Assembly (NCBI RefSeq): GCF_046119375.1
Contig: NW_027362773.1
Coordinates: 162,254,001 to 162,318,000 of the forward strand
Direction: 5' to 3'
DNA from: Phyllobates terribilis
Lineage: Eukaryota
DNA length: 64,000 nt
Below are positions 19,001 to 22,000 of this stretch, piece by piece (position 1 is the first letter of the stretch; each line of letters opens with the position of its first letter). A program made the position numbers and the translations under genes. Under the pieces are notes generated by a model, which worked only from the letters and a program-made list of their open reading frames with translations, was not told where the DNA came from and made no database searches.

Positions 19001-22000
19001 GGAAACCACAGCTGTGATCTCCGCACAACGTACACGGCCAAGGAAGAGTTAAAAGGTGCGAGGACGCGTCGCCCAATTCCCAGCACATGTAATATAAAGG
19101 GGCAGAGAGTCTGACACGCAGCAAAGCCGAGCGAGAGCTTCACCGAGAGCAGCTCCGACCAGCGACACGTAGGTGCGGTGCTATTTATTACAGGGCATAC
19201 GGTATTATAGTGCGGGCGGATGGACAGACGGGCACCGAGGGACGGGACACGAGCAGCAGACTTCACTAACTGGTTGGATGGGCCGAGCGCTGGTATTCCA
19301 TGGGTGACGGGGGGCCCGGGTCTCTGCCGCTCCACAGGTAGCAGGGGGGGGGGCCCGGGTCTCCGCCGCTCCACAGGTAGCAGGGGGGGGGGGGGCCCGG
19401 GTCTCCGCCGCTCTACAGGTAGCAGGGGGGGGGCCCGGGTCTCTGCCGCTCTACAGGTAGCAGGGGGGGAGCCGCGGGTCTCTGCCGCTCTACAGGTAGC
19501 AGGGGGGGAGCCGCGGGTCTCTGCCGCTCTACAGGTAGCAGGGGGGGAGCCGCGGGTCTCTGCCGCTCTACAGGTAGCAGGGGGGGAGCCGCGGGTCTCT
19601 GCCGCTCTACAGGTAGCAGGGGGGGAGCCGCGGGTCTCTGCCGCTCTACAGGTAGCAGGGGGGGAGCTGCGGGTCTCTGCCGCTCTACAGGTAGCAGGGG
19701 GGGAGCCGCGGGTCTCTGCCGCTCTACAGGTAGCAGGGGGGGAGCCGCGGGTCTCTGCCGCTCTACAGGTAGCAGGGGGGGAGCCGCGGGTCTCTGCCGC
19801 TCTACAGGTAGCAGGGGGGGAGCCGCGGGTCTCTGCTGCTCTACAGGTAGCAGGGGGGGAGCCCGGGTCTCTGCCGCTCTACAGGTAGCAGGGGGGGAGC
19901 CGCGGGTCTCTGCCGCTCTACAGGTAGCAGGGGGGGAGCCGCGGGTCTCTGCTGCTCTACAGGTAGCAGGGGGGGGAGCCGTGGGTCTCTGCCGCTCCAC
20001 AGGTAGGAGGGGGGGGCCGTGGGTCTCTGCTGCTCTACAGGTGGGGGTCTTTCTCACCTTTACCTCTCCAGTTGGTCACACTGCATATAGGTATAATAGA
20101 GAGGCGGACTTTCAGATCAGAGAAGACATAGCATTGGACAATAGCTGGAGCAATGCATGCCAGGAGGAGAAGACAAGGATGGTCCAGTACCTTTAGTTCT
20201 AGCAGGATGACAAACCAAGCACTATAAAAAAAAAAAAAAGGTGAGGAGGGGGTGGGGCGGTGTGGCAGGTTACAGAGCAAGAGAATTTGAGAGTTTCTGG
20301 GCACAGACTGGTTTGACCTTCTTATGAAGGATGAGGCCAGCAGGGGTCTTTAGGATCTGGAGCGAGGACAGGTGGTCCTTCTTCCTTATCACCACAGCAG
20401 AAGTTTGTTTTTAGTGTAATGAGGCACAAAAATCTAGTCGCTCTTCTACCCCTCGGCCGCACATGACCCCGCTGCATTTTTCGGCCTTTCCCCCCGTAGT
20501 TTCCTGGTCCTCAGCTTGTCTGGCCCAGACCACCTATGAACGAGCATTTAATAATCTTCATTCTTCGCCCCTTTGGGGTCACAGTTATAACGCGCTGATC
20601 TGTTATTCTGACTCCTGGACGTTTCATGTTTTACAGTTTATTTCTGTATTTTGTTAAAAAAAACCAAAAAAAACACCTGTACAAGAAAATGAAGCTAACT
20701 AGACTAATGTCTGTCTCCGCAGCCTCGATCCCCCGATCTGACATGTACAGGCTGGCGCTCTTCCTCTTGGTTTGCGCGTGCTCCCTCCAGTACTGGACGC
20801 GCGTCAGCGGGACCGGCGCCCCGGCTCGTCACAGACGTGGCGTGCTGGATCTAGTAGTGACCCTGTGGTGTTACAGAGATCGGCTGAAGGTGCCCCTGCT
20901 GGGCATTAACCTGTACGGCTGTTACTGTGGCACGGGAGGGGCAGGAGCGGCGGTGGATGACGTGGACCGATGCTGCCTGCGCCATGACTGCTGTTACCGC
21001 TATTCCCGGATTGACCTGCGGTGCCACAGTAAGGTGAAGTGGCAGCTCTACCAGTTCTCGTGCGGCCCTGCGCACACCCAATGTCATTCCTCCACGCTGT
21101 GCGGCCGGATGGCCTGCGAGTGCGACAAGCAATTTGCAGAATGTCTGACCAGAGCGAAGCCGAGGAGGAGACACTTCTTCTACAACAAGAAGGAGCTGTG
21201 TGTCGGCCCGCACGACGTCTGCCCAGAACTGCACCCCAACCTGACGGCCATATCCGAGAGGAGCCAGGACCCGACCCGCCCAGAGCTCGGCCCGGCCAAG
21301 AGCAGGAAGAAGAGATGGCGAAGACGGAAGACGACGGCCAAGGAGAAGAAGAAAGCTGTGGGCCGCCCGGCACTGTGGATGTGACAGCCGGCCACTGGGG
21401 AACATCGCCATTGTACTTAAAGGGAAGGGGTCATTAAAGAAATGTAAAGCACTAATGGGTTAGATTGTTTTAATGGTATAAAATACTAAAAATAACTTAA
21501 AGTTTTGATATTTTCCAACTTTAAACACTAGAGGGAGCAGCTGCTGAAATTTGTCATGAAAACCTCGGGTAGTGCTGGCTCGCCTTACGACTGAAGTAAA
21601 AGTGGGCGGGGTCTGATCACATGTGTGATGTCAGTGCTCCCCGCCCATTCTGGGCATTTCCAAAAGGATAAGGGAGGATGAAGTTTGGGATCAGAGAGCG
21701 GAGACATCACTGCTGACTGCGGAGAGACGCCGAGGTGTGGACACAGGATGGCCGGCAGCACCGATTCTGTTAGTGCTGCCCGCCGTACCACAAACTGGGA
21801 TTAGATACATGGAGTTAATCACACATGATGGGATTAGATGCACGGCCCTGCGGACAGTGTCGCCCATGATGGGATTAGATGCATGGCCCTGCGAACCGTG
21901 TCGCACACGATGGGATTAGATGCACGGCCCTGCAGACCACGGCATACATGATGGGATTAGATGCACGGCCCTGCAGACCACGGCATACATGATGGGATTA

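Follow-up and report, generated by a model that had tools for sequence, protein, structure and literature searches.

The conventional catalogue of secreted phospholipases A2 (sPLA2s), comprising groups IB, IIA-F, V, and X, was built on mammals. In group IB the propeptide ends in a single trypsin-type Arg, and group IIF is a conventional sPLA2 with a sizeable extension past the last core cysteine, in which it resembles the protein described here. The canonical group 10 (PLA2G10) gene is split by introns, as the first-pass annotation of the DNA studied here had stated, and this holds in the frog Phyllobates terribilis, where the named group 10 sPLA2 (P0237) lies in the same assembly on another contig and takes up 40,452 nt for 155 aa. 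The sPLA2 gene reported here is carried by a stretch of 64,000 nucleotides of P. terribilis DNA, which is referred to as the window, and its coding sequence is in one exon.

The gene encodes a complete sPLA2 precursor of 213 codons followed by TGA and lies on the plus strand of the window at 20743-21384, as seen in the ORF listing and its translation, in the match to Pfam PF00068, and in the gene called there in GCA_046119375.1. The ATG is at 20743, the TGA ends at 21384, and there is no stop codon in between. The uninterrupted, GC-rich ORF that had been noticed at first pass was thus borne out at these positions, its GC content being 62% and its GC3 78% compared to 48% in the 500-bp flanks. 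The PF00068 match scored 87.8 bits (E 8.9e-25) against a cut-off of 32.1 and it is the single domain found in the protein by that scan. In addition, 153 solved sPLA2 sequences matched the protein and its closest orthologues are up to 84% identical to it. On this sequence evidence, namely the Pfam score, the solved sPLA2 matches, and the orthologues, an ORF that arose by chance is ruled out. On the minus strand opposite the PLA2 coding sequence there are ORFs of 186 and 155 aa, and these are shadow ORFs that are expected opposite a GC-rich coding region.

The precursor begins with a predicted signal peptide, residues 1 to about 23 (20743-20811, plus strand, as are all parts of the precursor), whose cleavage point is approximate. 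The signal peptide proposed at first pass is compatible with the hydrophobic core seen after M1 and with the helix that AlphaFold predicted at residues 2-19. Next is a basic propeptide (20812-20838) that ends in RHRR, an R-x-x-R site of the proprotein convertase type, which was assigned from conservation and from the profile match to the pro-group X chain 6g5j that extends over the propeptide stretch including this site. An R-x-x-R immediately N-terminal to the mature start is found in 38 of 39 relatives, and in an alignment of 36 sequences the conservation of R29 and R32 is 90% or higher. The translation confirmed both the propeptide end RHRR|G and the mature start at 20839 (G33) as first proposed. 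The mature PLA2 core, residues 33-161 (20839-21225), was delimited from conservation, dN/dS, and fold. It has the Ca2+ loop YGCYCGTGG at residues 58-66, the His-Asp codons (cat gac) at 20983-20988 that encode H81 and D82, Y85, Y103, CECD at residues 125-128 with D128 as its last residue, and 16 Cys counted downstream of the propeptide. The earlier reading was correct as to the Ca2+ loop, the His-Asp codons, CECD, and the number of Cys. Beyond the core is an extension common to the orthogroup, residues 162-180 (21226-21282), which was recognized from conservation and carries an N-L-T sequon at N167. The last Cys is directly followed by 'CP' in at least 90% of the 36 aligned sequences, and a sequon lies at most 14 residues from it in 26 of the 39 relatives. 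The remaining residues, 181-213 (21283-21381), form a polybasic tail that was defined from the neobatrachian alignment and from charge counts, with a KSRKKR-W motif, a terminal P-x-L-W, and 14 K+R versus 2 D+E in 33 residues, giving a net charge of +12. In the 36-sequence alignment this tail (KSRKKRW, terminal PLW) is kept among neobatrachian frogs only.

The residues invariant in the 36 sequences were C43, Y58, G59, C60, C62, G63, G65, G66, D72, D75, H81, D82, Y85, D128, and the remaining Cys, and Y103 was at least 90% conserved. The protein thus has the catalytic dyad, the Ca2+ loop, and the Tyr and Asp residues of a conventional sPLA2 (His48/Asp49, Tyr52, Tyr73, Asp99, and Y-G-C-x-C-G-x-G-G), and about 40 species have kept all 16 Cys along with the residues for catalysis and Ca2+ binding. 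When rates were estimated by the Nei-Gojobori method, comparison of the core with E. coqui gave a dN/dS of 0.051 and comparison with Engystomops one of 0.105, dS being 0.75-1.33. Such values among hyloid frogs show strong purifying selection on the PLA2 core. The polybasic tail, with a dN/dS of 0.32-0.50 among hyloid frogs, is moderately constrained. The AlphaFold model had a pLDDT of 86-93 over most of the core and 47-63 in the polybasic tail. Foldseek comparison of the model with 50 solved sPLA2s gave a probability of 1.00 and target-normalised TM-scores (TMt) of 0.75-0.86, the best (0.86, rmsd 2.4 A) being to human group X 1le6 with similar values for groups IB, IIA, and IIE. The predicted fold is that of a conventional three-helix sPLA2.

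These data bear on two readings of what the protein does. It could be a catalytically silent PLA2-like protein, either an otoconin-like matrix protein or a receptor ligand, given that one RefSeq name in the orthogroup is 'otoconin-90-like' and that a long C-terminal extension with a polybasic tail is unusual for an enzyme of this family. Inactive PLA2-like proteins, however, typically lose some of the catalytic or Ca2+-loop residues, whereas here H81, D82, Y85, D128, the loop glycines, and the carbonyl-donating positions are invariant over 36 sequences and about 450 million years; moreover, 'otoconin' is an automatic best-hit label and the protein is single-domain. We consider a silent protein improbable. 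Slightly less improbable, but still unlikely, is that the gene was recruited in neobatrachians to skin-gland or antimicrobial defence with the tail as a membrane-active module. The strong basic charge of the tail, its restriction to neobatrachians, and its dN/dS are what one would cite for this, but the core enzyme is conserved in animals that do not have such glands and the tail is predicted at low confidence.

The first-pass annotation had placed the ORF antisense in a repeat-filled intron 1 of MTCH2, and both the nesting and the repeats were upheld: the PLA2 gene lies between coding exons 1 and 2 of MTCH2, which is on the minus strand, and about 64% of the roughly 27-kb MTCH2 coding intron 1 is minisatellite. 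The host was identified as MTCH2 via matches to solved MTCH2 chains. Coding exon 1 (45650-45748, minus strand) matches residues 1-30 of solved 'Mitochondrial carrier homolog 2' chains (E 4.4e-11), and 17877-18008, also on the minus strand, matches residues 58-93 of solved MTCH2 chains (E 5.9e-15). Coding exon 2 (18290-18403, minus strand, approximate bounds), which falls between the blocks that match these two residue ranges, was recognized as a tblastn block common to the MTCH2 loci of six species. In all, at least 11 conserved coding blocks found by tblastn make up the MTCH2 coding region seen in the window (6921-45748, minus strand), and the assembly calls a 296-aa Mito_carr gene that spans the PLA2 gene on the opposite strand.

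When the MTCH2 locus was examined in other vertebrates, orthologues were found in frogs, newt, lizard, whale shark, and sturgeon. In Lissotriton, X. tropicalis, Podarcis, Rhincodon, and E. coqui the gene calls put the PLA2 antisense within a Mito_carr gene that encodes about 300 aa, and taken together the gene calls of six other species, including Ranitomeya, have the same antisense nested arrangement. For the assembly from which the window comes and for Ranitomeya, bullfrog, and newt, gene tables were used. In seven species the gene span equals 3 x (aa + 1), which is the coding length. The sturgeon orthologue is a single exon that adjoins MTCH2 exon 1 just outside the MTCH2 coding region; the location inside MTCH2 intron 1 on the opposite strand holds in tetrapods and whale shark. 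Caecilians, turtles, snakes, rays, paddlefish, and coelacanth also have related proteins, which bear generic names assigned automatically. No member of the orthogroup was found by database searches in birds, an alligator, mammals, or teleosts. When 1.84 billion representatives were searched with a profile, no member of the orthogroup scored below 165 bits and no other protein above 132 bits. Thus, two earlier suggestions did not stand. The gene was thought to be possibly lineage-specific, but the same single-coding-exon gene is at the MTCH2 locus in Xenopus, Eleutherodactylus, Ranitomeya, newt, lizard, whale shark, and sturgeon. It was also thought to have been missed by annotation, but it is a called gene in this assembly and its relatives bear automatic RefSeq names, namely 'taipoxin alpha chain-like', 'crotoxin basic subunit-like', and 'otoconin-90-like'. 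Whether an intronless vertebrate PLA2 orthogroup at this locus had already been described, a possibility that the first-pass annotation had raised, has a divided answer: it exists in database annotation, whereas in the literature no published description of an MTCH2-locus PLA2 orthogroup was found by full-text searches, whose coverage leaves out most subscription journals. We conclude, with a probability of roughly 85%, that the gene is the P. terribilis orthologue of an ancient gnathostome sPLA2 gene that sits at the 5' end of MTCH2 and has one coding exon.

The same observations bear on the proposal that this is a recent, lineage-specific processed retrocopy of PLA2G10, either a young functional retrogene or an as yet undecayed pseudogene, which came to lie in MTCH2 intron 1 by chance. 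An uninterrupted GC-rich coding sequence within a repeat-filled intron and a cysteine pattern and propeptide like those of group X would be expected of such a copy. However, shark, lizard, and frogs all have this gene at this locus, its identity to the group 10 clade is about 34%, which is no higher than to other sPLA2s, the dN/dS of the core is very low, and the group 10 protein of the same genome, P0237, scores 104 bits compared to at least 178 bits for orthologues of the window protein. This makes a recent retrocopy extremely unlikely, and a recent pseudogene is ruled out by the distribution and dN/dS.

As the assembly also contains a distinct multi-exon group 10 gene, the MTCH2-locus gene is a paralogue of it, and likewise lizards, turtles, and snakes carry both a group 10 gene and the MTCH2-locus gene. 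A neighbor-joining (NJ) bootstrap tree was made from a thinned set of 85 sequences with 500 replicates, in which the orthogroup included P0184 and P0206, known from Logan SRA assemblies only. The deep branching of this tree is weakly resolved. The orthogroup had 80% bootstrap support, it was joined with a clade of single-exon genes from elasmobranchs in 51% of the bootstraps, and a sister relation to group X was seen in 0 of 500. Going by the tree and the separate group 10 gene, the gene was placed neither within the PLA2G10 clade nor as an orthologue of it.

This leads to the question of how the single coding exon arose. The coding sequence is without the introns of related genes, as in a retrogene, and most simply the single exon reflects one very old retroposition or intron loss; no parent gene could be identified from the NJ tree, and on present data retroposition and intron loss are indistinguishable. 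The event, whichever it was, would predate the split from the single-exon clade of sharks and rays. Retroposition is plausible and, if it happened, it is older than the shark-tetrapod split, while derivation from PLA2G10 in this way, which had been proposed at first pass, is unproven. The alternative that concerns the origin only is that introns were lost stepwise or that the gene was intron-poor ancestrally. In its favor, a 5' intron seems to have been either retained or acquired, a poly(A) remnant or target-site duplication is not to be expected at such an age, nor is one apparent, and the NJ tree yields no identifiable parent. Against it, all coding introns are missing at once in both the MTCH2-locus and elasmobranch clades while group 10 is multi-exon, and a single reverse-transcription event is simpler. 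We regard stepwise loss as doubtful, though by no means far-fetched. A broader proposal, to which we give a little less than even odds, is that the MTCH2-locus genes and the elasmobranch single-exon genes make up a further ancient group of conventional vertebrate sPLA2s which is group X-like in disulfides and propeptide, was born by retroposition before the gnathostome radiation, was kept for about 450 million years, was lost independently in mammals, birds, and teleosts, and was named only automatically and never described.

The gene had been called intronless at first pass and this is true of the coding sequence only, for the gene itself likely has a 5' intron just before the ATG. Comparison with orthologues points to a polypyrimidine tract followed by CAG at 20710-20722 on the plus strand as a candidate 3' splice site, with 20 nt between it and the ATG, and E. 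coqui, Engystomops, and X. tropicalis have similar pyrimidine-rich sites ending in cag at 24-37 nt from the ATG on its 5' side. Ranitomeya is the closest relative, and its gene model shows a 5' intron. Its isoform X1 has a gene span of 2045 nt for 228 aa, and therefore there is an intron of about 1.36 kb immediately 5' of the canonical ATG in that species. In the window, a six-frame scan found an upstream ATG whose first five codons, M-D-R-R-A (19220-19234, plus strand), are the start of Ranitomeya isoform X1, and this ATG tentatively points to a candidate 5' exon some 1.5 kb further 5'. A search for its splice donor guided by the Ranitomeya X1 N-terminus gave none that was convincing in the right phase. 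A second candidate 5' exon has a TATA-like box near 19093 and AG|GT at 19172/19173, and the data fit the two candidates equally well. Between MTCH2 exon 2 and the PLA2 gene there is also a conserved non-coding block (18768-18925, plus strand), which blastn aligned with E. coqui over 71 nt at 80% identity and with Engystomops over 94 nt at 70%. A three-way alignment of this block has an invariant TATA-like stretch, and the block could be a promoter or a 5' exon. The Engystomops gene model has a different upstream coding exon, which could mean that 5' structures vary or that the models are in error. On the 3' side, orthologue comparison points to an ATTAAA (21433-21438, plus strand) that starts 49 nt after the stop codon as a candidate polyadenylation signal; in the orthologues AATAAA or ATTAAA is found 5 to 464 nt beyond the stop codons.

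A probable course of events can be outlined, in which expression, the 5' exon, and both cleavage events in P. terribilis are what we infer. Transcription would start within MTCH2 intron 1, probably at a short 5' exon about 1.5-2 kb upstream, and this exon would be spliced to the acceptor 20 nt before the ATG. Searches turned up no short assembled contig with the exact X. tropicalis protein, which is weakly compatible with rare or restricted expression. The precursor would enter the secretory pathway, form eight disulfides, and probably be N-glycosylated at N167, and it would remain a zymogen until a furin-type convertase cleaves after RHRR32. This cleavage would free the N-terminal helix, and in sPLA2s it is the N-terminal helix that completes the membrane-binding face. 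The mature enzyme would then cleave phospholipids at the sn-2 ester by means of H81/D82 (H48/D49 in standard numbering), Y85, Y103, and D128 while loop 58-66 would hold Ca2+, and it is from the conserved residues only that we infer this Ca2+-dependent sn-2 hydrolysis. The neobatrachian polybasic tail may bind anionic surfaces or may be clipped at its own KSRKKR site.

Nothing known about the sPLA2 family is overturned by these findings. They show that non-mammalian vertebrates retain at least one more old, well-conserved, and apparently active sPLA2 which mammals seem to be without, and which is filed under misleading automatic names. To frog biology it offers a candidate secreted lipase with a frog-specific polybasic tail. 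For genome evolution, MTCH2 and the nested PLA2 are a clean pair of host and nested gene that is found together from sharks to tetrapods and this pair could help to date and polarise rearrangements at the MTCH2-AGBL2 boundary.

Among known systems the comparison with group X has two sides. The first-pass annotation had recognized PLA2G10-type hallmarks, and these are present: each of the 16 mature Cys aligns with a Cys of named group 10 proteins, both the N-terminal one of group I type and the C-terminal one of group II type among them, the disulfide connectivity being judged from aligned columns and not from coordinates, and a basic propeptide has a putative convertase-type dibasic end directly before G/S-[VIL]-[LF]. 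In addition, 6g5j, which is pro-group X, was the best profile match among solved structures at 107.8 bits. These likenesses, along with the best TMt to 1le6, would fit the reading that the gene is the frog PLA2G10 orthologue itself, relocated and stripped of its introns. However, the mature group X chains scored 88-92 bits, which is no better than the IB and IIA chains at 92-94 bits, the core identity of about 34% equals that to other sPLA2 groups, and the orthogroup was never sister to group X in the NJ bootstraps. This reading is as remote as that of a recent retrocopy, and the second, group 10 gene in the same assembly, together with the reptiles that have both, rules it out. In structure, the window protein has 3 more residues than group X between helix 1 and the Ca2+ loop, 2 more before the beta-wing, and 1 fewer in the loop that follows, and it has a 53-residue C-terminal extension whereas group X stops 1-2 residues past the last Cys. 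Likewise, its gene has one coding exon and is at MTCH2 whereas the group X gene is multi-exon, spans 40 kb, and is elsewhere in the genome.

With group IB (PLA2G1B) the paralogue at MTCH2 shares the conventional fold, the Cys11-type N-terminal cysteine, and synthesis as a zymogen with an N-terminal propeptide, and the IB chains scored 93-94 bits, which is similar to the group X scores. Its top single-sequence match was 1y6o, pig IB engineered with the group X disulfide. It differs from IB in that it is without the pancreatic-loop length, has the extra C-terminal disulfide cysteines, and has a furin-type R-x-x-R site in the propeptide. No group IIF protein was among the close matches in any search, and the window protein has the group I-type N-terminal cysteine which group II enzymes are without. 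The single-exon sPLA2s of sharks and rays (P0038, P0039, P0044, and P0211) are like it in their length class of about 185 aa, the same 16 Cys, the RR|S propeptide end, the N-terminal L-W-C-Y-R motif, and the one-exon coding sequence. They differ from it in being at another locus, beside a RasGEF gene, in being about 40% identical, in having L-C-D for E-C-D and a different beta-wing, and in being seen in elasmobranchs only.

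The ORF at 20743-21384 on the plus strand has 213 codons and a TGA stop, and in its translation the features claimed by the first-pass annotation were found where it had placed them: the propeptide ends in RHRR and is followed by G33, whose codon starts at 20839, the Ca2+ loop YGCYCGTGG occupies residues 58-66, the His-Asp codons lie at 20983-20988, CECD is at residues 125-128, and there are 16 cysteines downstream of the propeptide. The ORF is indeed GC-rich, with 62% GC and 78% GC3 compared to 48% GC in the immediate flanks. The protein scored 87.8 bits against Pfam PF00068 (cut-off 32.1) and matched 153 distinct solved sPLA2 sequences and, judged from this score and these matches, the ORF is not of chance origin. 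Two long minus-strand ORFs do not look gene-like: the one at 20851-21411 mirrors the GC-rich PLA2 coding sequence on the opposite strand, and the one at 19413-20057 is minisatellite in translation, repeating every 13 residues.

In GCA_046119375.1, the assembly that holds the exact window protein, a call for a 296-aa Mito_carr gene spans the locus on the opposite strand. When the host coding blocks were placed through translated comparisons against six related loci, at least 11 were found on the minus strand between 6921 and 45748, and the host was named from two of them that were searched against solved structures. The block at 45650-45748 matches residues 1-30 of 'Mitochondrial carrier homolog 2' chains (E 4.4e-11) and that at 17877-18008 matches residues 58-93 (E 5.9e-15), and a third, at 18290-18403, falls between these two in the protein; all three are on the minus strand. 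This order places the PLA2 gene within MTCH2 coding intron 1, which is about 27 kb long, pointing towards exon 1, and thus the antisense nesting proposed earlier is borne out. The intron (18404-45649) had also been described as repeat-filled, and minisatellite arrays make up about 64% of it: these are at 19309-20042 (39-bp unit), 21822-25737 (41 bp x 95), 27600-28186 (55-bp unit), 30620-40893 (31 bp x 337, 10.3 kb), 42495-43950 (a 31-bp unit related to that of the 10.3-kb array) and 45416-45628. In Podarcis, Xenopus and Ranitomeya, by comparison, this intron is a few kb. Arrays of a 71-bp unit with identical consensus occur at two distant sites, 12433-13147 inside MTCH2 and 56854-58279 beyond the first exons of the neighbouring gene, which suggests a dispersed satellite-bearing element. 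By similarity, first-coding-exon blocks of a cytosolic carboxypeptidase (Peptidase_M14, AGBL2-like) lie on the plus strand at 49528-49596 and 49827-49964, in the head-to-head arrangement with MTCH2 that other frogs share; the corresponding human neighbour is AGBL2. In lizard and sturgeon, unlike in frogs, the carboxypeptidase gene is in tandem with MTCH2, and this difference in orientation implies that the frog lineage underwent an inversion. Weak translated similarity (35-54%) was seen between 55771-56154, 60721-61215 and 63729-63984 and a stretch inside the neighbouring gene of E. coqui (18.6-19.8 kb of locus L006); these are possibly dispersed-repeat copies.

The PLA2 gene had been called intronless, and this holds for its coding sequence, which is uninterrupted and in one exon, but probably not for the gene as a whole, which is likely to have a 5' intron. 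A pyrimidine tract and CAG, resembling an acceptor, end at 20722, 20 nt ahead of the ATG, and similar sites are found 24-37 nt ahead of the ATG in three other frogs. In Ranitomeya, the closest relative, RefSeq isoform X1 spans 2045 nt for 228 residues, a span that implies an intron of roughly 1.36 kb immediately ahead of the canonical start. At 19220, some 1.5 kb upstream, the window encodes the same first five residues as this isoform, and when a donor site for this candidate 5' exon was looked for in the window sequence none was identified. A non-coding block at 18768-18925 with a TATA-like stretch has conserved counterparts in Eleutherodactylus and Engystomops and may serve as promoter or belong to a 5' exon, and ATTAAA begins 49 nt past the stop codon. 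In the deposited Engystomops model (L007:10001-12350) the conserved signal peptide gives way to a coding exon further upstream, antisense to MTCH2 exon 2 and overlapping it; that genome nonetheless has the conserved single-exon ORF in full, at 11733-12350 of the same locus, and the deposited 5' end is probably mis-modelled.

The gene was not missed by annotation, since this and many other assemblies have it as a called gene, nor is it a lineage-specific frog invention, as the same gene is found at the same locus from frogs to newt, lizard and whale shark. It belongs to an ancient, conserved and poorly named orthogroup of conventional sPLA2s. In the protein search the Ranitomeya relative was 84% identical to the window protein and those of other hyloid frogs 64-74%, and identity stepped down further, within 44-61%, through ranoid and archaeobatrachian frogs, caecilians, newt, squamates, turtles, coelacanth, sturgeon, and sharks and rays, all under generic automatic names. 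No description of the orthogroup was found in the literature covered, which mostly excludes subscription journals. Gene tables, in which a gene span of 3 x (residues + 1) was taken to mean a single coding exon, show one coding exon antisense in an approximately 300-aa Mito_carr gene in Lissotriton, Xenopus tropicalis, Podarcis, whale shark and Eleutherodactylus; the bullfrog orthologue is also single-exon, on a short scaffold. In sturgeon, two tandem single-exon copies are found just beyond the MTCH2 coding region, in the interval from its exon 1 to the carboxypeptidase gene, and therefore nesting is the usual state and the shared trait is the position at the 5' end of MTCH2. The second sturgeon copy (L004:11699-12328, plus strand) is 1.1 kb downstream of the first and 39% identical to the window protein. 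Ranid frogs have, beside the orthologue, an extra divergent copy (P0042, P0183, P0207) with 45-48% identity to the turtle query and the propeptide site R-D-E-R; the Logan SRA-assembly contigs that carry it, many in number and 1.4-1.7 kb long, may be transcripts.

When amniote and fish members were used to seed another profile search, the scores broke cleanly: orthologues reached 178 bits or more, next came two-domain proteins and the elasmobranch paralogue (a second single-exon sPLA2 clade of sharks and rays at another locus; 137 bits), and below these stood proteins for the most part named group 10 sPLA2, at about 100-114 bits. This search returned no bird, alligator, mammal or teleost member, and the orthogroup is apparently missing from mammals, birds and teleosts. 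Because two sequences known only from Logan SRA assemblies group with turtles and have no assigned taxon, an archosaur copy is possible.

The claim that the gene has been kept functional agrees with its dN/dS. Nei-Gojobori estimates for the PLA2 core were 0.051 against E. coqui and 0.105 against Engystomops (core dS 0.75-1.33; at greater divergence synonymous sites are saturated), compared to 0.40 and 0.46 for the signal peptide and propeptide and 0.32 and about 0.50-0.51 for the C-terminal tail. This pattern is not that of a decaying pseudogene. No change is seen across 36 aligned sequences at the catalytic His and Asp, at Tyr85 and Asp128, at the glycines of the Ca2+ loop or at 14 of the 16 cysteines, and C134, C153, Tyr103 and both propeptide-site arginines reach at least 90% conservation. 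In the AlphaFold model, pLDDT is 86-93 across most of the core, and the target-normalised TM-scores (TMt) for its superposition on solved sPLA2s of groups IB, IIA, IIE and X are 0.75-0.86. Sequence and model together show an intact, constrained gene whose predicted protein has the sPLA2 fold and every residue that sPLA2 catalysis needs. From established sPLA2 biochemistry, the precursor would be secreted, eight disulfides would form, a furin-type convertase would cut at RHRR/G, removing the propeptide and freeing the N-terminal helix, and the mature enzyme would hydrolyse phospholipids at sn-2 in a Ca2+-dependent manner. The frog-specific polybasic tail (14 K+R in 33 residues, with a second site KSRKKR) may attach to anionic surfaces or be removed by cleavage.

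The first-pass annotation had proposed a retroposed PLA2G10-like paralogue; what stands is a paralogue with the group X-type 16 cysteines and propeptide. Decisive against a PLA2G10 orthologue is a separate protein named group 10 sPLA2 in the same assembly (another contig, gene of 40,452 nt, 155 residues), and therefore the window gene is a paralogue and not PLA2G10 itself; descent from PLA2G10 is not demonstrable. A sister relation of the orthogroup to group X never appeared in 500 NJ bootstraps, in which the orthogroup had 80% support and its union with the elasmobranch paralogue 51%, and core identity to the group 10 clade, 34%, is on a par with the 33% to all other sPLA2s sampled. As for retroposition, one old event would most simply account for a loss of every coding intron together, in the orthogroup as well as the elasmobranch paralogue; stepwise intron loss may instead have produced the same state. 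The elasmobranch paralogue in thorny skate (L005:10001-10558, plus strand) has a single coding exon and adjoins a RasGEF gene; it is also found in electric ray, devil ray and sawshark, and its last catalytic helix has L-C-D instead of E-C-D.

When compared with known enzymes, the model is best matched by human group X (1le6; TMt 0.86, rmsd 2.4 A), and the best solved match to the family profile is the group X pro-form 6g5j (107.8 bits), partly because its propeptide aligns. The scores of mature group X chains (88-92 bits) do not exceed those of pancreatic IB (92-94) or crotoxin B (89-92). Each of the 16 cysteines has an aligned counterpart in proteins that their sources name group 10, and the same pattern is present in the elasmobranch paralogue and nine other unnamed representatives. 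The window protein differs from group X in small insertions and deletions and in a C-terminal extension that opens with a nearly invariant C-P and usually, in 26 of 39 relatives, carries an N-x-S/T sequon.
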